64,000 nt of DNA from Prasinococcaceae sp. CCMP 1430 (GCA_013416795.1 RQSC01000010.1:149949-213948), one strand, 5' to 3'; counted from the first letter of the stretch, positions 3,725-24,446 are shown. Numbers and translations are program-made. The notes: generated by a model from the sequence alone, not told the origin.

Positions 3725-5624
3725 ATGGCGGTCGCGGAGGCCATCGCGTTCACGCCTGGGGCCGTCGACGACGACGGAACGGATAGCGACGCGTCGCTGA
3801 CTCCGCACGTGCACAGGCGGCTGACCAGCGACAAGCTCAGGGCCGAGATGTTCGAATCGGGTGCGTGCGCGCGAGCGAGCGCCTGCGTGCGCGCGCGCGC
3901 GCGTGCGTATGTGTGCGTGCGCGTGCGCGCGTGCGCACCGGCGAGCGCAGGCACCGTGCAAGCCGGCGCTGACGCGCCTCCTCGCAGGGCTGATGTGCGA
4001 CGGCGGCGGCGAGGCGGATGGGGTCGGCGGCGCGCAGCTGAGCAACGCGGAGAGCGCCGCGGCGAGCGCCGACGCGCTCTTCAACACGGGTAAGGTCGCA
4101 CCCGGCACTAATACGATGGGCTACCGCTTCGACTCGCCCGAGTGGGAGGCGGAGGTCAAGCAGCAGCGCAAGGCCACATGGGAGTGGCTCAAGGGCGTGG
4201 GCTCCAAGGTGTTCGAAGGTGTCAATCTCACGCGCATCTCGCTGCCGGTGCGGCTCTTCGAGGGGCGCTCCTACCTCGAGCGCATTCGCGACAATTGGAG
4301 CTACCTGCACCTGCTCGAGCGTGCCGTGGCGGAGCGTGACCCCGTGCGGCGGTGCGTGCGCGCTGACTCGCGCGCGCGTGTGCGTGCGCGTCGCGCGAGC
4401 CTGCCGCGCTCGCTCGCGGCGCGCGCGGCTCAGCGGCGCGCGCGAGGTGCTGGCGGCCGCGCTTTGCTGACCCGTCACGCGCATGCGCACGCCACGCCTC
4501 GGGGACGCACACTCTCGCAGGATGACCCTGATGGTTGCCTTCGGCGCCAGCGGGCTCTGCAGGCAGGTGAGCTTCGCCAAACCCTTTAATCCTATCCTCG
4601 GCGAGACGGTGAACGCCGAGTACACCAACGGGTACACCCTCGCGTGCGAGCAGCTCTCCCACCACCCTCCCGTGAGTGCCTACCAGCTGGTCCCCGCGGA
4701 CGGCGGTTTCGAATTCTACGGCCACGCGGGTTGGAGCGGCAAGGTGTACGCCAATACCGTCAAGGGCTTCCAGCTGGTGCGCCGCGCCGACCGGCGAGCT
4801 TCGTTGTGTGCCTGCGTGCTAGTGTGCGCGTCCACACGCGCTGGCTGCGACTGCGCCTTCTTTACTCGCTCGTCCAATCGTTCGCTCTCCCGCCGAGCGC
4901 TGACGCGAGGCCCCCCTCCCCTCTCTACACCCATCCACCACCACCATCGCCACCACCACCAACCCACACGCGCGACGGCCGCCCCGCACGCACGCAGGGC
5001 CTCAACACGCTGCGCTGCGCAAGCACCGACGGCGCGCGCATCAGCTGGAACCTGCCGACGGTCGTCATGAAAAACATCATGTTCGGGGTGCGGGTGCTCA
5101 CGTACGAGGGGGAGATGGTCTTTCGCGACGACAGAAACCGGCTCACGTGCCGTCTGCAGGTGGGCGGCGGCAGCAAGGGGTCGGTGGCGGAAGACGAGGA
5201 GGCGGGGAGCAGGAACCGGAGCAAAGGCGGCGCCAGCGGCAGCAAGAAGGGCGGAGGCTTCTGGAAGCGGAAGTTCGGAAAGGGCAAGGGCTCCCCTGAC
5301 ATGCTGTCAGGGCGGGTGGTGTGCGACGACGAGCCGAGCGTGGCGCTCGCGACCTTCGAGGGGAACTGGATCACGCATCTCGACTGCGACGGCGAGCGGC
5401 TGTGGGAAAGCTCGATGCCGACCGTGCGCGCGACGCGCTTTTCGCGCAAGCTGCCCTCGGACGGCTCGCTGCGGCCCGACTGCAACGCCGTGGCGGCGCG
5501 CGAGTGGAACAGGGCGCAGCGCGCCAAGGAGATGCTGGAAAACCGCCAGCGCGCCGACGCCAAGCTGCGCAAGGAGGCGCTCAAGCGCATCGCCAAGGCC
5601 GAGAAGGCCACGCGCAAAATTTGA
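3725..5624 (+). CDS. Oxysterol-binding protein-related protein (ORP/OSBP), 4 exons
   Basis: ORD motifs RISLPVRLFEGRSYLER, KPFNPILGET and EQLSHHPPVSAY, plus C-terminal AQRAKEMLENRQR. GTGCG...CAG introns at about 3861-3987, 4352-4520 and 4777-4998. Confidence 0.93.
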
Positions 5625-6128
5625 CCAGGCGGGCGCGGGCGCAGGGCGCGAGCCGCACAGTAAGCGAGCTCCGCACCAGAGGGGTCATCCCGCTTCCGCT
5701 GAATAGCTTCCCACCGCGTCCAAGCCGAAAGGCACCGCAGCTTCGCATGCTACAGGAGCAGCGCGACTCCGCCTGGTATCGCGGCGCCCCATGCGGTTCC
5801 CCCGGCGCCCGCCCGAATTGTCGCGGATTTCCGGGCACTCGGCAGCGGCCGTGGAGGTGGGCGTCGCGCGGCGAGGACGTGCGCTGGCGTTGATGAGGGG
5901 AGGGCGCGCGCGGTGGGTGGGTGCTTGGGTGCTTGGGTGGGTGGCGGGCCGCGGGGGCTACACTCCGCGCTCGCCCGGCGCTGCGGCGCCGCGGCGCTGC
6001 GCGGCCGCGGGGCGCTTACACCAAGGCCGAGCCGCTGACGCGCATCCGCGACATCGCCCACGGCAAGGGCGGTGTGGCAGCCGAGGGGCGGAGGAGAGCG
6101 AGGGCTGGAGGGTGGGGGGGGCGCAACC

Positions 6129-10026: not shown

Positions 10027-11819
10027 ATGGGGATGATGGGAGCGACGTTGGCCGCGAGGCCGGCGCGCGCGGCGCATGGCATGCCCCTTGCGCCGCGTGC
10101 GCGGCGCGGGCGAGCGCGAGAGCGGCGCGTTGCGGCAAGAGCGGACGAGGGCGGGCGCGATAGGGCAGCTGGCGGCGACCGGGCCGCTACGGGCGATGAT
10201 GAGGGCGCCGCACTTATTGAGTGCGCCGATGAGCTGGGAGCCGGTGCCAGCACCACCGGCAGTGGCGACGCAGCATCCGAATCGGCCAGCAGCAACGACG
10301 AGCCCGTAGCCCTGCCGGCTGCCGGACCGGCTGCAGCGAAGGGCGGTGCACTGCGCGCGGCGTTCGCTACGGTGGTCTTGCTTGTGTGCGCTGGCGCATC
10401 GGCCGCCTACGCGGGCGTCCTCCCGACGCTCGACCATCTGCCCGGCTGGCGCGAGCTAGTCCCATTCCTCGAGAGCCAGCTGCACAAGGAGCTGCAACAG
10501 CTGTACATGCCCGCGCTGTCCGCTGCAGCGCGCCTCGGGGCGCTCGTCGTCGTGCGCCTGGCCGCTGAGCCTGTGGCGCGCTTCCTCTACACGACCATCT
10601 TCGGATCTGGGGCCGACTCGCAGTGGGAGAACAGCTTCGAGCGCCGCCTCGTCGTGGCCGCCAAGGGCCCTGCGGAAGTCGTGCTGCTGGTGAGCGCGGT
10701 CTGCGCGCTGCTGGAGCACGTGGTCGGTCCGCTCCTCGCGCTGCCGCCGTCGAGCGTGCGGCTGCTCACCAACCGCGTGACGTCGCTCGCGCTGGTGCTC
10801 GCGCTGGGGCGCGTGCTCTTCGCATGGAAGGATCAGCGCCGCACCGAGGCCGAATGGCAGGCGGAGATCTCGGGCGAGGCCGACCCCGCCATCGGCTCCG
10901 TCGACAAGCTTCTCTCGGCCCTCATCGTGGCCATCACTGCAGTGGTCTCGCTGCAGTCGCTGGGCTTCGACGTGAACTCGCTGCTCGCACTAGGCGGCAT
11001 CGGCGGTCTCGTGCTCGGTCTGGCCGGTAGGGACATCTCAGAGAATTTGCTGAGCGGCCTCATGGTGCTGACGACGAAGCCCTTCGCTGTGGGTGACATC
11101 GTGCGCTTCTACGGCCCAAACAGGAGAGAGGTCCACGGAGTCGTGCTCGACATCGGCTGGTATCGCTCGACGATCCGAAGCTTCGACTTCGAGGTCTTTG
11201 TGGTTCCCAACAGCGTATTCACCAGCGCAGTCCTCCTCAACATTAGCCGCCGAGGACGAACGTTTAGGTGCGTTGAACGCACGCGCGCGCGCGCGCGTGA
11301 GGGTCAGTGCGCGCGATGTCGCTGACTTGCGCTCGCGCTCCCACGCGCAGGTACAATGACATGTTCTGGTTGGCCCCAGAGGACGTGCTGAAGGTCGACA
11401 CCGTCGTGCGCGACTTCCGTGCGTACTTGCGCAACGCCGAGTTTGTCATACAGGGCGGCCCAGGCATGCACAGGCGCGTTTTCCTCTACGAGATCAAACC
11501 CGAGGCCTGCCTCGTCTACGTCTCCTGCTACGTGGAGGCTGCAAACCGCGACGCCTACCTCAACTCGCGCGAGGCGTTGATCCTGCAGTTTGCGCGCTGC
11601 ATGGAGCGTGCGGGTGTGCGCTTTGCCGCGCCGCGGCGGGTGGGCCTCGCGGGCGACCCTTTCGCAGTCGACCCGGGCTTCAACCACGACCGGGCGCAGT
11701 CGATCGCCCAGGCCAACGCGAACAGCACGGCCAACAGGGCGTCCATCGAGCAGGCCGGCGGCGTCGAGCCGCAGCCGGGCGGCGCGCGCGGGGTGGAGCG
11801 GCTATGTACGGTGCGGTAG
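10027..11819 (+). CDS. MscS-like mechanosensitive channel, plastid MSL2/3 type (2 exons)
   Basis: Transit-peptide-like N-terminus, TM helices, LLALGGIGGLVLGLAGRDISENLLSG, KPFAVGD, HGVVLDIGWYRSTIRSFDFEVFVVPNSVF. Intron 11268-11350 joins R|YNDMFWL in frame. Confidence 0.92.
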
Positions 11820-12168: not shown

Positions 12169-13791
12169 ATGGCGTTGGCGGCGCTGGCAGCGCTCGCGGC
12201 GCGGCGCGCGGAAGGCGCTGCCCCGCTTCGCCGCGGCCGCCGGCGCTGGCGATGGCGATGGCGAAGGCGGGGGCGACGAGGGGGGTGCGGGCGGGGACGA
12301 GGCCGGTGGTGGAGCGGCGGGAGAGGCCGATGCGCCCGCCGGCGGGGCGGAAGCCGGAGCGGAGCCCGCCGAGCCGAAGGCGAGCGCGGAGAGCGACGAG
12401 GCTGTGCGGGGTTTCCTCTCCTTCACGGGCTTCGGAGGTGCGCCTCGTGCTTGTGCGCTGACCGCAGCGTGCGGCTGGCTGCTGCGTTAGGGTTGGCGAT
12501 GCGCAGTGCCGCACAGCGCTCGCACGTGCGCGGCGAGATGATGGCGCGCCCGCGCTGACTGTCCCGCGTGGTGGCGGCGTGCCGCGCAGCTGGGGCGCTT
12601 CCCAACGGCGGCTTCGGTCCCGACGAGCCTGTGGCGATGCCGGACCCCCGTGAGGACGAGACGCTCTTCGACGACCTCGCCATCGAGGATCCGCGTGAGC
12701 GCAGGAAGGCGGTGCGGCGCGAGCGGAGGCGGCGCTTCGGTGGTGGCGAGGGTGGCCAGCCGGAGAAGCTCGCCGAGGGGCAGAACGTGTGGGTGGAGCG
12801 CATGAAGCGCAACGGCAAGCTCATTCCCTACGGGCAGGGCATCGTCGATGACTGGCAGCAGTATGAGCTCGACGAGGTCAGCAACGAGGTGCACGGCGAT
12901 CTGTCCGACTTCGCGGGGCGCGTGCACGACCCAGAGCGCGACGAGGCGTTCTGGAACATGTACCGCAAGGCGATTGCCGAGCTCGGCTCCGAAATCGATC
13001 GGCGTGCGAGCGCCGACCGTGCCGTCCCTGCGCGTAAGGTCAAGCGCATGCTAGGCACGCCTTTCGTTCGCTGGACCAACGTGGTGGCCACTCGCACCGA
13101 TGGCAGCGCCTCGCCCATGGCGAAGAAGGTCGCCGCCGAATTCTCTGTGCCCGACGCGGCCGCCCACTTCGGACTGACGCCTGAGCAGGAGCTGCGCATG
13201 GTCGAGCTCGCGGGCACGCGCTACAACCCCCGCAAGCGTTCCATTCGCATCGTGTCGAGGCGTTTCCGCTATCGCGAGCAGAATCAGCGCGACATCGCGC
13301 GCATCATGGTTCGCCTGATTGCGGAGGCACGGCGCGCGAAACCGAACGTGGATACAGAGAGCATTGCAGCTTCGGGAGAGGGCGAGGGCGAGGGCGGGGG
13401 CATCGACGAGGCGCTGTTGAGCGCCGAGGCGCGCGAGGAGCGCGCGGCGCAGCTGGAGGAATGGTACGCGCACGTTCGCGCGAGCGTGCATGCCCAGGAG
13501 GAGGCGGAGGCGGAGGGTGAGGCGGAAGCGCTTACTGCAGCCGAGGTCGAGGCTGAGGTCGGGGCAGAGTTGGAGGCCGAGACGGCAAGTGCAGAGGTTC
13601 CAGGCGCCCCAGTGGAGGCCGACGTGGCAGCCGAGGCAGCCGAGGCGGTGACAGGTGAGGGGGATGGCCTTGCAGCCCTGAGTCGGAAGGAGCTGCAGGC
13701 GCTCGCCAAGGAACACGGCCTGAAGGCCAACGCTCGCAGCGAGGAGCTGATCAAACAGCTGCGCGCAGCGGGGGCGAAGGTACCGCAGTGA
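12169..13791 (+). CDS. Mitochondrial small-subunit ribosomal protein mS35 (MRP-S28 domain) with C-terminal SAP-like motif
   Basis: AKKVAAEFSV...LRMVELAGTRYNP...IRIVSRRFRYREQNQRD matches the mS35 core as I recall it. Intron about 12438-12590. The first exon needs a 1-nt shift near 12210. Confidence 0.7.
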
Positions 13792-15447: not shown

Positions 15448-16345
15448 TTACGAGCGCCGCATCCCCAGCGCGCCAAGCAGCGCTTCCTGGAGTGGGTGCG
15501 CAGGCGGGCGGGCGCCCACGGCACGCCACAGAGCTGACAGCGAGCCCTCGATGCAGCGTGCGAGCCGCACCGAGATCGGGTCGCGGCGCGGCGCGAGGGG
15601 CTCGACCGCCAGCGTGAGCATGCCCATGCGGTTGCCGTACACCACGTCTGCGCGAGGAATTCAGCCGCGTGCGCACGCGTGGCGTCTCACGTCAGACACA
15701 TCGTCCAGTGCGCGCGCAAAGGCGGGGAGGGGCGGGGGAGATGGGAGGGGGAGCTGGCGTGCGAGGGAGAGCACAGTGAACGTCGCGACCCCGCGTTTGC
15801 TATGCGCACGCACCGGTGAGGATCCTGTCGCCGACGAAGAGCACGCGATCCGTGCCGAACGCAGCCGCCCCCTCGCCCAAACCCCCTTTGCCACGCTCCT
15901 TTGCACCGCTGACATCGACATCGACCCTTCCCGCCGCATCGACTGGACCGCCGCCCGCGAAGTGCGCCTCAATCTCCTCGCGCGTGCCGCGCGGCTTCTT
16001 GTGCGCGTGGCGGAGCACGCGCACGCCGAGGCGCTCCTCTAGGTCGGCCGCGAGCTCGCCATCGGGGTCAAACTGTGTGAGGCCCGCCGAGTTGCTCATA
16101 ACGGCCACGCGGTCGCGGCCAAACGCGGCGACGGCTGCGGCGAGTGCGCCGCGCAAAGGCCCGTGTGCGTCCTCCTCGAAAGGCAGCGTGAGCGTGTTGT
16201 CCTTGTCGAACAGCACCCCTTGCACGCCTGCGTCCCTGAGCGCGGCGAAGTCCACGCAGCTGATGTCCGCGCACGCCGCGTGCGGCACGGCTTCGGTGGG
16301 ATCGCGCAGCACCTTGAAGAATGCCGCTGCGCCCCCCGCGTTCAT
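15448..16345 (-). CDS. HAD IIIA phosphatidylglycerophosphate phosphatase (PGPP1/GEP4-like); N-terminal extension unresolved
   Basis: Motifs FDKDNTLT, VMSNSAG, HKKP and FVGDRILT|DVVYGNRMG; intron 15648-15813. Confidence 0.9.
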
Positions 16346-16828
16346 GTTCTGCCGCAGCAGCGCGAGCTTGGAGGGCCGAGGCGCCGGCGCCGCGAGCGGC
16401 GAGCGCTCGTTCACACCTGCGCCGCCCGCCGCGCCCGCTGCGCCCGCTGCGCGGGCCCGCGGCGGCCGCCACCGGTCCGGCGGGCGCGCCGGCCACCCGC
16501 ATCGTCGCGGGGGAAGATTAATCCTCCGCTTCCCAGCACGTTGCTGCACCCCTCCCCGCCCCGCCCCGTGCTCGGGGCGCCCCGCCCTGCGCGTGCGGTG
16601 TGGCTCTACAAGAGGCTCGGTTTTGTTACGCATGGGACGACGCTGGCTCCGCGGCGCCACAGCCGGTGCGGCGCGAGGGAGGGCGCCGAGCCAGAGGGGC
16701 TCCTCCCATCGAAACGGCTGACGCCGAGCCCGCGGCGCGCCTGCCGGCTGTGCTGGTGGTGACGCCGCTTGCATGGCTGGCGCCGGCCTGCTGCGCCGCC
16801 GCCCGCCGCCCGCGCCCCCGTCGCCGGG

Positions 16829-19750
16829 ATGGGGCTTGAGGCAACGGCGCCCACCTCGACCCTCCCGATAGCCGTCCTTGAGGCGCAGGGGCCACCCCGT
16901 CCCAGGGTGGTGAGCCTCAGCACAACACACACCGCGCTGCTGGCGTGTCACTTGGACGCCGGCGGCGTGTTGGTGGGCGTGGACACGTTTAGCGCGCGCG
17001 ACGCGAGATGCGGTCCGCACGTCGCGGGGCTGCCGACGTTCGACCCGTGGGCGCCCGATGCCGACGCCATTGCGGCGCTCCGCCCGGACCTCGTCATCGT
17101 GAGCTACCAGGTGACGGCGGACGCGATGGCGGCTGCTAAACTCTCGGGCGCCAACTTTGAGACGCTCCACCTGCCGTGTCCCGAGGGGGAGGGGGCGATC
17201 GAGCAGGCGTACGCGCAGTGGCGGCGGATGGCCGACATCACGGGAGCGCCGTGGCGAGGCGAGCGTCTGGAGTGCGACGCGAGGGCGCGGCTGCGCGAGG
17301 CAAAGGAGCGGGTGGAGAGAGCGCCGGGCTTTGCGGGATCTTCCTGCGTTTTGGAGTTCGACCCCGCTGGGCCTTACCTCGGCAAGAGCACCTCTCTCGT
17401 CGGGAGCCTGCTGAAGACCGTCGGGATGCTCGACAACCTTGCGGATGCCCTGGCGAGCGACTCCTCTTACCCTCACGTGGCGCAAGCTGACCTTGAGACC
17501 ATGGATCCGACCTTCTACATCGTGCTTCACGAGGGTGGGCCTTCCGTACCGCAGCGGGTGGCGGAACGAGGCCGCTCGATGCGTTGCTTGGACTCGGGGC
17601 GCGTCGTACGCGCCTTCTCCCCAGACGCCGCCAGCCAATGGACGCCCGACGTGGTGGGCCTCGTGGAGTCCATCCTCGCACAGCTCACGTACGGCCCGCC
17701 GCCGCCCGGCCACACGCCTCCGCGCACGGTGTGCTTTCTCGGTGCCGCGACGGAGATCGTGTGCGAGCTCGGCCTCGCCTCGGCGCTCGTCGGCCGGTCG
17801 CACGAGTGCAAGGAGCCCGCGAGTGTCTGCGCGGCGCTCCCTCAGGTCTCATCCCCGGCGTTCAACGCGCACTGCGCCTCCCCTGACATCCCGCGTGCCG
17901 GCGAGGAGCTCCTCAAGGCAGGCCTAGCGCGGTACGAGGTGGACGTCGAGGCGCTCGCCGCGCTTGCGCCGGAGCTGCTCGTCGTGCAGGACGCGTGCAG
18001 CGTCTGCGCCGTGACCTCAGCAGATTTGGAAAGGGCGGCAGCGGACCATCTGGGCGGGTGCCGGATCCTGTCTTTAAAGCCGCTTGTGCTGGACGACGTG
18101 CTGGACGCGCCTCGGTCGATCGGAGCGGCGATCGGGGCTGCTGATGCCGGCATTGCGCTCGCGGACAGTCTGCGCCGGCGCGTCGAGGCGGTGCGGACCG
18201 CCACCTCTGCGCTCTCCGAGCCGCCGGTGCGCGCTGCATGCCTGCAGTGGTGCTCTCCGCTCATGGGCGCAGGCTACTGGGTGCCAGAGATGCTCGCCGC
18301 GGCCGGTGCGGTGTCTGTCACGGGCGAGCCAGGCGGCGGCACGCCCATGATTACGCTCGACGCGCTTGTCGAGGAAGACCCGGACGTGGTGGTCGTCATG
18401 TGCTGCGGGTACACGCTGGAGCGCGCACTGCAAGACTTCTCGCAGTACCTCGCCGACGATCCGCGGTGGGGCAGCCTGCGCGCGGTCCAGGCCGGCCGAG
18501 CATTCGTCGCCGATGGCGACCGTTTCTTCAACAACTCTGGCCCGTCCGTCGCCCGCTCGGTCGAGCTCCTCGCCGAGATGTGTTACCCGGGCACCTTTGG
18601 CGACGGCGGAATGGTCGCCGGCGCGTACGTCGCGCTGCGGGACCGCGGCGCGGCAGCGCGGAGGCGACAATATCCGGGGCAGCTCGTCGCAGCCCCACGT
18701 GGCGGCCTGAGCGCGGAGACGATGGCCACCTCGTGCCGCAGCGCGCTCATCGAATCTATGCGCGAGGCCGCCGCGCGCCACCCCCGAGCGGTGGTGCTTC
18801 TCTCGGGTGGCGTCGATACCGCGGCGGCGCTCGAGGCGAACGCCTCGCTGCCGCCCTCCGAAGCCATGGAGTTGTCGTCAGCTGTGACGGTGTTCGCGTC
18901 GGAGGCCGCCACGGACCGGCCGTACGCGCCGTTGGTGGCGGAGCGACACGGCCTCCGACACGTGGTGCTGGACGTGCGGCTAGACGCAGTGCTGGAAGTG
19001 ATTCCCGCGTGCGTGCGGGCGTTGGAGACGTTCGACGGGATGGAGCTGCGCAACGCGGCGGCCGTCATGCTCGGTCTACGCGAGGCGAAGCGGCTGGGCG
19101 CCACCGCCGTGCTCACGGGAGACGGGGCGGACGAGCTGCTGGGAGGGTATAGCTTCGTCTGGGGCACGGATGAGCCCGCGTGGAGCCAGAAGCGGAGGGA
19201 CATGGCGTCGTCGATGGCCTTCACGACCCACGCCCTCGCCGCGAAGCTGGGCATGGCGGCCGAGAGCCCCTTCCTCACTTCGCTCTTCATCCGGTGGGCT
19301 CTCGACCGCACGTCCAAGCGGGAGTGCGTCGGCGAGAGGGAGGTAGAGCTGTCGCCCACGAGCGGCCGAGTCCGCCACGCCACGGGCAAGCTCTGCCTGC
19401 GCGACGCATTCCCGGAGTCGCCCTCGGCATGGCGTCGCAAGGACCCCATTCAGCTCGGCAGCGGCAGTGAGGGCCTCCCCGCACTGCTCCAGTCGCGCAC
19501 ATCGGAGGCGGAGTTCGAGGCGTCCAGGGCTCGGGCGCTGAAGGAGGACGGGGTGCGCCTCAGGGATGCGGAGTCCCTCTACTACTTCGAGGTCTTCAAG
19601 AGTGCGTTCCCGGGCGGCCTTCCCGGGGTCGAGCGCCCCGGCGCCGGCGCGCCCGGCGCGTGCGTCGCGTGCGGCTACCTGCTCCCGCCCGGCGCCAACA
19701 ACTTCTGCCGCGTGTGCGGCGAGTGGCCCGCCACCGGCTCCGGAGGGTGA
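16829..19750 (+). CDS. Fusion: two BtuF/TroA-like substrate-binding domains + asparagine-synthetase-like ATP-PPase domain + C-terminal Zn-ribbon
   Basis: One intronless ORF. SBP1: RVVSLSTTHT, DAIAALRPDLVI. SBP2: VCFLGAATEIVCELG..VGRSHEC, QDACSVCAV, GYWVPEM, FNNSGP. AsnS-like: LLSGGVDT, LTGDGADELLGGY, SPFL, KLCLRDAF, RRKDPI. C-terminal CVAC...FCRVCG. Confidence 0.85.
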   Translation: MGLEATAPTSTLPIAVLEAQGPPRPRVVSLSTTHTALLACHLDAGGVLVGVDTFSARDARCGPHVAGLPTFDPWAPDADAIAALRPDLVIVSYQVTADAMAAAKLSGANFETLHLPCPEGEGAIEQAYAQWRRMADITGAPWRGERLECDARARLREAKERVERAPGFAGSSCVLEFDPAGPYLGKSTSLVGSLLKTVGMLDNLADALASDSSYPHVAQADLETMDPTFYIVLHEGGPSVPQRVAERGRSMRCLDSGRVVRAFSPDAASQWTPDVVGLVESILAQLTYGPPPPGHTPPRTVCFLGAATEIVCELGLASALVGRSHECKEPASVCAALPQVSSPAFNAHCASPDIPRAGEELLKAGLARYEVDVEALAALAPELLVVQDACSVCAVTSADLERAAADHLGGCRILSLKPLVLDDVLDAPRSIGAAIGAADAGIALADSLRRRVEAVRTATSALSEPPVRAACLQWCSPLMGAGYWVPEMLAAAGAVSVTGEPGGGTPMITLDALVEEDPDVVVVMCCGYTLERALQDFSQYLADDPRWGSLRAVQAGRAFVADGDRFFNNSGPSVARSVELLAEMCYPGTFGDGGMVAGAYVALRDRGAAARRRQYPGQLVAAPRGGLSAETMATSCRSALIESMREAAARHPRAVVLLSGGVDTAAALEANASLPPSEAMELSSAVTVFASEAATDRPYAPLVAERHGLRHVVLDVRLDAVLEVIPACVRALETFDGMELRNAAAVMLGLREAKRLGATAVLTGDGADELLGGYSFVWGTDEPAWSQKRRDMASSMAFTTHALAAKLGMAAESPFLTSLFIRWALDRTSKRECVGEREVELSPTSGRVRHATGKLCLRDAFPESPSAWRRKDPIQLGSGSEGLPALLQSRTSEAEFEASRARALKEDGVRLRDAESLYYFEVFKSAFPGGLPGVERPGAGAPGACVACGYLLPPGANNFCRVCGEWPATGSGG

Positions 19751-22607: not shown

Positions 22608-24446
22608 ATGCTACGCTCGGCGCTCGGCAGCGCCCTGCGCTCGGCACGCGGCGTGGCGCGCTCGCCTGCTGCCGCGCCATTTTCCATCAGGCTGGAGCCC
22701 GCATAGGCCTGGAAGCTGCCGGCCACGTGCCCGGCGCGGTCGAGCGGGCCGCCAATATCCTGGGTGATCGCGCTGCCATCGGGCGCAAAGGTCTGGAGCG
22801 ACAGCGTGTTGCCCGCGGAGCGGTGCGCCTGGCCCTGGAAGCCCTGGTTGGAGCGCCAGATGGTGTTGTCGATCAGGCGCATCGTGTTCAGGTCGGTCGC
22901 GCTCGGCGCATAGTCCTGGGCGGCGGCGGGCGCGGCGAGTTCCGCTCGGACGCGGACGTCGCCGGTGGGCGCGTCATAGAGGACGCGGCAGCGGCGTGTG
23001 GTGCCGACGTCGTGCCGCTGGTGGTGCTCAAGCGTGGCAAGGCGCGGCTCTTTCGCGAGGGCAATCCGCTCGTGTTTGGCGGCGCCGTCGACTGCGTGAT
23101 CGGCAGCCCTCCGCCACGCTCGGGCGACCGCGTCGTGGTGACCGATGGTGCGCGCAACCCTGTTGCGTGGGGCGTCTTCAACTCAGACAGCATGTATCGG
23201 TGCGTGCGCGTGCGCTTGCGGGCCAGGAAGGCCATGTCTTGGCCCCCCTGCCCGCCTCGGCCAGCTCTCCTGTACCCCGCCATCGTGCCACACTCGGACG
23301 CGACGCTGACCCCAGCGCTGTCCACCGTGCGCCAGTGTACGCGTGCTGCAGAGCGCTGCGGATGCTGCCGCTGAGCCCGAGCTCGCGCTCGACGTGTCGC
23401 GATTATTGCGCGCGCGCGTCGCCGAGGCCGCGCGCTTGAGAGAGCTCATGGGCGTCACGCCGACCCCCGCGCAGGCCAGCGCGGGCGAGCCCACCAGCGC
23501 GTTTCGCCTCCTCAACGCTGAGGGCGACGGCCTGAGCGGTCTGGTCGTCGACGTGTTCGCGCACGCGGCGGTGGTGCAATCAAACGCCCAATGGACCGAA
23601 AACAATCGCGCGCACATCGAGGAAGCGCTGCTCAAAGAGCTCCCCTACGTGCGGCGCATCGTATGGCGGCGTAACGAGGCGATGCTCAAGCTTGAGGGTG
23701 GCGAGGACGCGCTCGAAGATGCACACGAGGGCACACTCGGCGGCGAGGGGGAGGGCGAGGGCGACAGTGGCGGCGAGGGCGACACCGTCGAGGTGTGCGA
23801 GGGCGGGCTGTCGTTCGGTGTGGACCTCGCAAAGGGTCAGAAGACCGGATTCTATTGCGACCAGCGTGATTCGCGCGCGTGGCTGCGCTCGTTGGCGGGG
23901 GTGCGGGGCGCGAGCGTGCTTGATCTATGCTGCTACACCGGTGGCTTTGCGCTTTCCGCTGCTGCGGGCGGCGCGGGGCGCGTTTTGGGAGTGGACTCGA
24001 GTGAGCGTGCGGTGACCATGGCGCAATCGAACGCGCAGCGCAACGAGGCGCTCGTCGGCGAGACCCAGCTGTCGTTCCGCGCGGGCGACGCCATCGATGT
24101 GGCGCGCGAGCTTGCGGCATCTGGGGAGCGCTTTGATATCGTCGTTCTCGACCCGCCCAAGCTCGCACCGAGCGCAAAGGCAGTGCGCAAGGCCGAGAGG
24201 AAGTACGCGGCGTTCAACGCGGCGGCGCTCGAGTGCCTGCGGCCGGGCGGTATATTGGTGACCCACTCGTGCTCTGGCGCCGTTGCGCGCAGCGGTCAGC
24301 TGCGCGAGATAGTCGAGGGGGTCGCTCTCAGGGCAGGTCGTCGCGCACAGCTCGTGCGGCGTGCGGGCGCCGCGCCCGACCACCCGGTGTCGGCATCCTA
24401 TCCGGAGTCGCAATACCTCGACTCGCTGGCGTTTGTCGTCAAGTGA
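22608..24446 (+). CDS. RlmI-like PUA-domain SAM-dependent RNA methyltransferase (organellar); first exon interrupted
   Basis: VLKRGKARLFREGNPLVF (PUA), FRLLNAEGDGLSGLVVD, QKTGFYCDQR, VLDLCCYTGGF, VVLDPPK. Intron 23200-23335. Transit-like start MLRSALGSALR. Confidence 0.9.

Follow-up and report, generated by a model that had tools for sequence, protein, structure and literature searches.

What could a protein do that joins two BtuF-like binding domains to an asparagine synthetase fold without a glutaminase? The question is raised by one gene in a window of 64,000 nucleotides, the whole stretch of DNA analysed here, from Prasinococcaceae sp. CCMP 1430 (GCA_013416795.1 RQSC01000010.1:149949-213948). 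A sequence-only reading of this window had described one uninterrupted open reading frame (ORF) of about 970 amino acids and had guessed that its product captures and amidates corrinoids or another chelate inside the cell. The ORF encodes 973 amino acids, and the best overall explanation is that the protein would act as a cytosolic corrinoid capture-and-amidate enzyme of a B12-auxotrophic alga, a reading to which we assign a probability of roughly 50%. The broader statement, that the gene and its enzyme family are linked to corrinoid (B12) metabolism, is very likely to be right. The host is taken as Prasinoderma coloniale, a vitamin B12 auxotroph according to its genome paper (PMC7455551); the window averages about 70% G+C, the published value for this alga being 69.8%, and near-identical TARA contigs indicate a marine origin.

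The build of the protein is largely as the sequence-only reading had described it. The motifs SHEC, QDACSVC, SGGVDT, TGDGADE and CxxC..CxxC are all located where it had placed them. The profile check that it proposed for each third of the protein gives Peripla_BP_2 for domain 1 (38.7 bits), Peripla_BP_2 for domain 2 (61.5 bits) and Asn_synthase for the enzyme part (73.7 bits), all above the Pfam gathering scores of 27.5 for Peripla_BP_2 and 21 for Asn_synthase. The AlphaFold check that it also proposed gives pLDDT values above 90 for domain 2 and above 95 for the enzyme domain. Domain 1 modelled alone reaches a pLDDT of 82.7 and a pTM of 0.80; in the full-length run it has a pLDDT of 25-55, with a poor mixed alignment in that part, and the whole model has a pTM of 0.49. 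The absence of a signal peptide is confirmed by inspection, as the first beta-strand of domain 1 is at residue 26 and the preceding 25 residues have no hydrophobic stretch, so the protein appears, by inspection, to have no signal or transit peptide and to be cytosolic. The absence of an Ntn glutaminase also holds, since no GATase or Ntn glutaminase domain is found in Pfam or NCBIfam scans and the alignment with AsnB begins only at about residue 206 of AsnB. The possibility raised earlier, that transcripts might reveal separate genes, is answered by the MMETSP/UniRef product P0007, which is identical to the window protein across all 973 amino acids, so that one mRNA covers all domains and both linkers.

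The enzyme part belongs to a family that is here named ASNL, made of an AsnB-like synthetase domain and a C-terminal Cys ribbon. In AsnB-type PP-loop domains, a carboxylate is adenylated and a nitrogen then displaces AMP. The ASNL profile matches residues 206-510 of Escherichia coli AsnB with an E-value of 2.4e-34, and the PP-loop, the Arg of 'TTIR', the Lys of 'EKxxLR' and the acidic residue of GxGxDE are conserved between them. The PP-loop residues S-G-G-x-D are invariant across the ASNL alignment (A1), and the Glu of AsnB (SGEGSDE) is replaced by an invariant Asp. Foldseek matches the enzyme part to the C-domain of ASNS/AsnB (probability 1.0), to beta-lactam synthetase and to CarA. The curated AsnB cutoffs, in turn, are missed by far (NF006949/TIGR01536, 63.4 bits against 499 and 59.9 against 267), which indicates that the window protein is not an asparagine synthetase.

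Members of ASNL share the motifs LSGGxDT, FDxMELRN, TGDGADELxGGYSF, GKxxLRxAF, WRRKDPIxxGSGS and CxxC..CxxC, all of which are present in the window protein, whose ASNL part is 34-50% identical to 25 stand-alone members. Two of the ribbon cysteines are invariant in the alignment and the other two are conserved in at least 90% of the sequences; in the model the ribbon lies in 10-residue blocks with pLDDT of 82-95, and Pfam gives a weak hint of a double zinc ribbon. Judged from sequence and predicted fold, ASNL is an AsnB-like adenylating enzyme rather than an asparagine synthetase, and forms a distinct, uncharacterised and sharply defined family. A module search over 1.8 billion representative proteins found that the binding and the enzyme modules exist also as separate proteins.

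The pathway in which this family takes part is suggested by its prokaryotic gene context. Seventy prokaryotic ASNL loci were fetched, their neighbouring genes were clustered and annotated, and profile searches were run on all ORFs. In bacterial loci, ASNL is on the same strand as, and tightly spaced with, cobamide salvage genes, which encode BtuB-type receptors, exported BtuF with FecCD and an ABC ATPase, CobU, CobT, CobS, CbiB, CobD, CobO and CbiZ. Such loci are found in Dehalococcoidia, Nitrospirota, Omnitrophota, Syntrophaceae, Clostridia, Anaerolineae and Thermodesulfobacteriota. In 10 loci the operons are preceded by a cobalamin riboswitch (Rfam RF00174, E-values from 8e-7 to 2e-29), and in one of them (L061) the riboswitch stands directly before ASNL. 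The most frequent neighbour, adjoining ASNL in 13 loci, is a DUF71 (Diphthami_syn_2) PP-loop ATPase with the motif GExGE[YF]H. These neighbours fall exactly into the DUF71-B12 subgroup, for which de Crecy-Lagard et al. predicted a role in B12 salvage in 2012 (PMC3541065). They made no connection between AsnB-like proteins and B12, and took the AsnB part of archaeal AsnB-DUF71 fusions to furnish Dph6 with ammonia (PMC3541065).

Several of these operons hold further fused or accessory genes. In an Omnitrophota metagenome-assembled genome (MAG), a 478-residue protein (L062:4962-6398, +) joins DUF71-B12 to Peripla_BP_2 ('TECCDYP') and is a bacterial counterpart of the eukaryotic fusions of enzyme and binding domains. 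Cobamide salvage operons also encode a fusion of a BtuF-like domain with CbiZ, 687 amino acids long and with an N-terminal hydrophobic segment (L049:5214-7277, +), and a 400-residue fusion of CbiZ with a PgpA-like domain (L068:4755-5957, +). Radical SAM/SPASM genes lie between or beside ASNL and DUF71-B12 in two B12 salvage operons (L050:1461-2855 and 4254-5859; L062:2453-3949), and no riboswitch is detected in either of these two operons.

The closest prokaryotic relatives of the window's ASNL come from two Thermoplasmata MAGs (L005 and L007), and in the ASNL tree, which is unrooted and in which mis-sliced streptophyte fusion sequences gave very long branches, these archaeal sequences cluster with those of eukaryotes. 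In both MAGs a cytoplasmic binding protein of the same SHEC type as domain 2 is the divergent neighbour of ASNL. These proteins score 367 and 321 bits against the domain-2 profile in hmmsearch, with an hhalign E-value of 1e-72, and the pairs adjoin BtuF/ABC transporter genes, to which L005 adds a CbiA-type amidotransferase and L007 adds DUF71-B12. The algal fusion thus mirrors a prokaryotic gene pair. A long ORF in L007 has an N-terminal extension that was considered as a binding domain and was rejected, the real SHEC-type gene being on the other strand. Other archaea with ASNL are an Asgard archaeon, Candidatus Jordarchaeum (L010), two Bathyarchaeia (L008 and L058) and ANME-related members of Methanophagales and Methanosarcinales (L026 and L036); no B12 genes are recognised in the examined flanks of these five loci.

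Both binding domains of the window protein show the class III build, in which one long helix connects two Rossmann-like lobes, with Foldseek TMt values of 0.80-0.84 to BtuF structures. The top match of domain 2 is Vibrio cholerae BtuF (5ysc), E. coli BtuF (1n4a) is matched with a TMt of 0.84 and a root-mean-square deviation of 3.0 Å, and the domain-2 profile matches BtuF 1n2z with an E-value of 5e-11. No structure is solved within the SHEC-type family; the nearest solved proteins are heme and B12 binders, and this closeness to the tetrapyrrole type speaks for the main reading. The BtuF equivalog model NF002894 is not matched by the window protein and gives only 24-33 bits, against a cutoff of 234, for stand-alone relatives of domain 2. 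These relatives number in the hundreds, are about 300 amino acids long, all begin at the first strand and have no signal peptides. Their alignment (A2) is characterised by the motifs GRSHEC, often QDxCxVC, WxxPLMxAGxWxPE, PCG and DGNxYFNRPGPR; the window domain carries SHEC, CCG in place of PCG, and DGDRFFNNSGPS, and is 30-47% identical to family members. All aligned sequences share the Cys of the SHEC motif, and nearly all share its His and Glu; QDACSVC is common but not invariant. A contact of the SHEC Cys and His with cobalt, the corrin ring or the ligand is speculation. One NCBI record of a Phycisphaerae MAG labels a SHEC-type relative as 'cobalamin-binding protein'. Longer SHEC-type relatives of 480-580 amino acids (P0098, with 512, P0092, P0099, P0076 and P0086) carry C-terminal extensions, one of which is AHSA1/SRPBCC-like, the others being without a Pfam match.

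Domain 1 is matched by Foldseek to heme binders and to BtuF (TMt 0.7-0.83). Its best sequence matches are bacterial lipoprotein binding proteins, with only 25-29% identity over the whole mature length, and no closer relatives of it are found among the matches. Other eukaryotic fusions carry a single binding domain; the doubling appears to be specific to the lineage of the window gene, and domain 1 looks like a later, lineage-specific addition.

The ligand need not be a corrinoid on fold alone. Sequence and fold searches match heme binders about as well as BtuF, and domain 1 also matches siderophore binders. Heme offers two free propionates, and the conserved Cys and His of domain 2 could bind a metal directly. 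The protein might then handle heme or a product of its breakdown, a siderophore or another metal complex, and the B12 context of its relatives would not be transferable to the alga. Set against this are the examined ASNL loci, in none of which heme or siderophore genes were seen nearby, the conserved neighbours and fusion partners, all of them specific to B12, and the window ASNL itself, which has the full signature of the family and is 40-50% identical to its members. Another chelate has therefore only a slight chance of being the ligand.

Eukaryotes provide a second set of evidence through independent fusion partners. The combination of a BtuF-like domain, the AsnS-like domain and the zinc ribbon, with one binding domain, occurs also in Closterium, in the lycophyte Diphasiastrum and in several unidentified eukaryotes, so that the architecture is not unique to the window gene. 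ASNL is fused to DUF71-B12 in Corallochytrium (P0005) and Bryopsis (P0244), both with GENGEFH. In the oomycete Thraustotheca clavata a 616-residue protein (P0328) has an N-terminal MMACHC/CblC domain, scored at 44.8 bits against a cutoff of 27, followed by ASNL. Two other proteins (P0155 and P0090) have the same build, with MMACHC scores at or below threshold. The fusions to BtuF-like, DUF71-B12 and MMACHC domains arose independently in eukaryotes. In one 482-residue protein (P0040) an N-terminal-glutamine amidase domain (Nt_Gln_amidase) is joined to ASNL and might serve as an ammonia source in place of the missing glutaminase. Among the best 120 of 893 matches, stand-alone ASNL is found in haptophytes, green and red algae, Mortierellomycota, chytrids, Basidiobolus and labyrinthulids, and an oomycete is also among the named carriers. 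The eukaryotic carrier groups other than fungi are known to use B12. Among fungi, use of B12 is reported for those outside Dikarya (PMC8085122).

These fusions could also be understood with the binding domains as B12 or tetrapyrrole sensors, or as docking modules, and with ASNL acting on something other than a corrinoid, such as a protein or peptide carboxylate or a metabolite needed when B12 is scarce. The nearest enzymatic relatives of ASNL use amino acids or peptides (AsnB, beta-lactam synthetase, and lasso and macrolactam cyclases), the DUF71 relative Dph6 amidates a protein side chain on EF2 (PMC3541065), and the Cys ribbon could mediate protein contacts. Regulation is, however, a harder explanation than substrate hand-over for three different fusion partners that bind or process B12, and the grouping of transport, adenosylation, loop assembly and ASNL under a B12 riboswitch points to the salvage of a small molecule. 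A sensing or docking role is very unlikely.

The corrinoid link is thus supported by four independent lines that concern ASNL: riboswitch-controlled operons, salvage neighbours, DUF71-B12 and the fusion to MMACHC. Together with the Thermoplasmata gene pairs and the conserved residues of the ATP site, they bear out the intracellular corrinoid interpretation of the sequence-only reading, which was originally a guess and is now strongly supported. Its claim that the architecture had not been described stands for the searchable literature, where no description of the ASNL family, of its B12 link or of the window architecture was found and only the DUF71 paper surfaced; it does not stand for sequence databases, in which unannotated examples exist.

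For the capture-and-amidate reading, the following mechanism is proposed. The BtuF-like domains would capture a corrinoid that the cell has imported. Domain 2, with its conserved SHEC type, is the likelier binder, domain 1 being the looser addition. They would hand this bulky ligand on to ASNL, the AsnB-like PP-loop domain tethered to them. With ATP, this enzyme domain would adenylate a free corrinoid carboxylate, and ammonia would then replace AMP. Because the glutaminase domain is absent, the nitrogen would come from free NH3/NH4+ or from a partner protein. As finished cobalamin lacks any free carboxylate, a corrinoid substrate must be a deamidated or incompletely amidated corrinoid or cobyric acid, which has a free f-propionate. 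A deamidated or incompletely amidated corrinoid, for example a cobalamin carboxylic acid, would be turned by amidation into a usable cofactor. ASNL would probably work side by side with another PP-loop enzyme, DUF71-B12, and the pair may, as speculation, serve two classes of side chain, acetate and propionate. Side-chain amidation as the ASNL reaction has an even chance of being correct. The more general proposal, that ASNL and DUF71-B12 together form an unrecognised B12 step in the three domains of life, in which corrin side chains are re-amidated by PP-loop enzymes, is tentative and falls somewhat short of even odds.

The free f-propionate of cobyric acid leads to the main rival, in which ASNL would adenylate this group and ligate it to aminopropanol, to its phosphate or to an alternative linker, as an alternative or helper to CbiB/CbiZ in lower-ligand remodelling. 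ASNL directly adjoins CbiB, CobD, CobU/T/S and CbiZ in several loci, DUF71-B12 was tied to the CbiZ/CbiB step by its phyletic pattern in 2012 (PMC3541065), and COBT and COBS explain the remodelling of pseudocobalamin by algae only partly (bioRxiv 10.64898/2026.08.07.738727). The same operons that favour this alternative nevertheless contain CbiB, which argues that ASNL is no replacement for it, and CbiZ co-occurs with ASNL (L049, L050 and L068). The fusion to MMACHC also fits better with a step on the finished cofactor. Carriers such as Mortierella are not known for nucleotide-loop assembly, which again fits a finished-cofactor step better. Nucleotide-loop assembly is for these reasons unlikely. 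Re-amidation of the corrin periphery is favoured because many carriers are eukaryotes that obtain B12 by import only, because MMACHC, which handles incoming cobalamin, is a fusion partner, and because CbiB stands beside ASNL.

Several observations weigh against the capture-and-amidate reading. The Nitrososphaerota are the largest prokaryotic group that carries ASNL, and their conserved ASNL synteny (Alba, Rpb6, S25e, an HTH protein and deoxyhypusine synthase) is uninformative on B12. The bacterial stand-alone homologues of domain 2 that were examined (P0035, P0042 and P0192) are orphans in non-B12 contexts, one of them following a TonB receptor. In the streptophyte fusions (P0003, P0020, P0002, P0004, P0032, P0038 and P0194), the Asp of the PP-loop is lost (SGGLAS or SGGLGS), several also lack the motif Arg or Lys, and they have very long disordered inserts and tails; these proteins, including that of the vascular plant Diphasiastrum, are probably catalytically altered or inactive yet retained. 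With the catalytic residues lost, the module would there do something else or nothing, while the window protein and P0021 keep the full catalytic set. Domain 1 of the window protein looks to be under relaxed constraint, with 5 nonsynonymous and 2 synonymous differences from L001, which are small numbers. The proposed substrates, deamidated or incompletely amidated corrinoids, are a postulated class. Finally, we know of no precedent for a PP-loop enzyme that acts on corrinoids, de novo amidation being carried out by the unrelated CbiA and CbiP.

A more radical doubt is that the fusion is an artefact of assembly or annotation, or a decaying gene. On a TARA metagenome contig 98% identical to the window (L002:10001-12921), a frameshift in the linker region splits the gene into calls of 626 and 342 amino acids, the cause being an indel of the assembly or a null allele that exists in nature, and the substitution pattern of domain 1 is nearly neutral in the small sample. 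The gene order of the window is the same on this contig. The ORF is nevertheless intact and full length in ten independent natural variants from TARA/Logan assemblies, and the ratio of nonsynonymous to synonymous polymorphism (pN/pS) of the whole ORF against L001 is 0.23, so the gene is under purifying selection. Domain 1 has 16 amino acid positions that vary among the environmental variants, about twice as many as domain 2 (8) or the ASNL part (9). The identical 973-residue transcriptome product, the intact catalytic motifs and the same fusion order in distant lineages also speak for a real gene, and the chance of an artefact is next to negligible.

The features of the gene are collected in the table below. 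The open frame itself spans 16769-19750 on the plus strand, with its first ATG at 16829 and its stop codon at 19748-19750. Four genes that flank it in the window, at 15800-16600 (-), 12568-13791 (+), 10027-11325 (+) and 23343-24446 (+), are ordinary nuclear genes, whose products are a mitochondrial PGP phosphatase, MRP-S28, an MscS-like channel and a SAM methyltransferase; none of these four neighbours is related to B12.

Table 1. Features of the fusion gene, with positions counted from the first nucleotide of the window
Feature	Residues	Position	Strand	Basis or remark
Complete intronless coding sequence	973 and stop	16829..19750	+	ORF scan; product identical to MMETSP P0007
Binding domain 1, class III BtuF/heme-type fold	~25-290	16901..17698	+	Pfam, AF2, Foldseek
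Binding domain 2, cytoplasmic SHEC-type BtuF-like family	~296-592	17714..18604	+	Pfam, AF2, Foldseek
SHEC motif	324-327	17798..17809	+	Alignment A2
QDACSVC motif	387-393	17987..18007	+	Alignment A2
CCGY, counterpart of the near-invariant family motif PCG	525-528	18401..18412	+	Alignment A2
Flexible linker between domain 2 and enzyme	~593-625	18605..18703	+	pLDDT ~30-60 in the full-length model
AsnB-like PP-loop synthetase domain (ASNL), without glutaminase	~626-935	18704..19633	+	Pfam, 73.7 bits
PP-loop SGGVDT	659-664	18803..18820	+	Alignment A1; aligns with AsnB SGGLDS
FDGMELRN	735-742	19031..19054	+	M, R and N invariant in the family; aligns with AsnB 'YDVTTIRAS'
TGDGADE	763-769	19115..19135	+	Aligns with AsnB 'SGEGSDE'
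GKLCLRDAF and WRRKDP	853-873	19385..19447	+	Align with AsnB 'EKHILRECF' (Lys motif) and 'WRQKEQ'
C-terminal four-Cys ribbon, CVAC...CRVC	945-948, 960-963	19646..19732	+	ASNL hallmark

Vitamin B12 limits marine primary production, and the window gene points to an additional intracellular enzymatic step in its use. What is new is the link of the ASNL family to B12, probably in an undescribed step of B12 salvage or repair, in a family that spans B12-using algae, early-diverging fungi, oomycetes, holozoans, many archaea and B12-salvaging bacteria. If re-amidation is the reaction, the B12 that is bioavailable in seas and soils would amount to more than cobalamin alone, and a second, non-homologous route to corrin amides would exist beside CbiA/CbiP. 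DUF71-B12, an orphan since 2012, would gain a concrete functional hypothesis. Eukaryotes would then chemically mend the corrin periphery of the imported vitamin, the Prasinoderma enzyme being wired to cytosolic BtuF-like capture domains. As the binder and the enzyme are joined in one soluble polypeptide, the hypothesis is directly testable in vitro.

Among known systems, AsnB/ASNS enzymes share with ASNL the fold of PP-loop ATP pyrophosphatases and the aligned SGGxD(S/T), Arg, acidic residue and Lys, from which adenylation of a carboxylate and attack by a nitrogen are expected. ASNL differs from them by the lack of the Ntn glutaminase, by its own motifs (MELRN and WRRKDPIxxGSGS), by the Cys ribbon and by a context of B12 rather than nitrogen metabolism. 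Beta-lactam and carbapenam synthetases also adenylate, with the AsnB fold, a substrate other than aspartate without using glutamine, and are structural matches of ASNL. They keep, in contrast, a dead N-terminal domain and perform an intramolecular ring closure, and the similarity of ASNL to them is much weaker than to AsnB (E-value of 1e-12 against 1e-34). BtuF is likewise a class III protein whose two lobes are joined by one backbone helix, and is the closest structural match of domain 2, whereas the window protein is predicted to be cytosolic, has no BtuCD partner, is fused to an enzyme and belongs to the separate SHEC subfamily.

The amidating enzymes CbiA/CobB and CbiP/CobQ perform the type of reaction proposed here, the ATP-dependent conversion of acetate and propionate carboxylates of the corrin into amides. 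In their reaction the intermediate is phosphorylated rather than adenylated, and glutamine is consumed. Their fold, a CbiA/MinD-like ATPase with GATase_3, is unrelated and they have no homology with the window protein. CBA1 and MMACHC are like the window protein in being eukaryotic B12-handling proteins, and MMACHC occurs together with ASNL in Thraustotheca; the window protein differs in its predicted cytosolic location, its match to Peripla_BP_2 and its lack of an MMACHC domain. CBA1 is predicted to resemble BtuF in structure but hardly in sequence, and its diatom form bears a signal peptide (PMC10828217), while no Pfam domain is associated with CBA1 of Chlamydomonas (PMC11439496). The window protein was considered as a CBA1, which is unlikely on these published descriptions, as CBA1 is barely BtuF-like in sequence and the window protein is a clear Peripla_BP_2 protein.

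DUF71-B12 proteins, a subgroup of COG2102 related to Dph6, are amidating-type PP-loop ATPases like the enzyme proposed here, are clustered with btuFCD and cbiB, and are neighbours and fusion partners of ASNL. They differ from ASNL in having the Diphthami_syn_2 fold with an ENGEF/YH motif (PMC3541065) instead of Asn_synthase, and the Pfam scan finds no Diphthami_syn_2 (DUF71) domain in the window protein. The two PP-loop families, different in fold, are probably parts of the same pathway.

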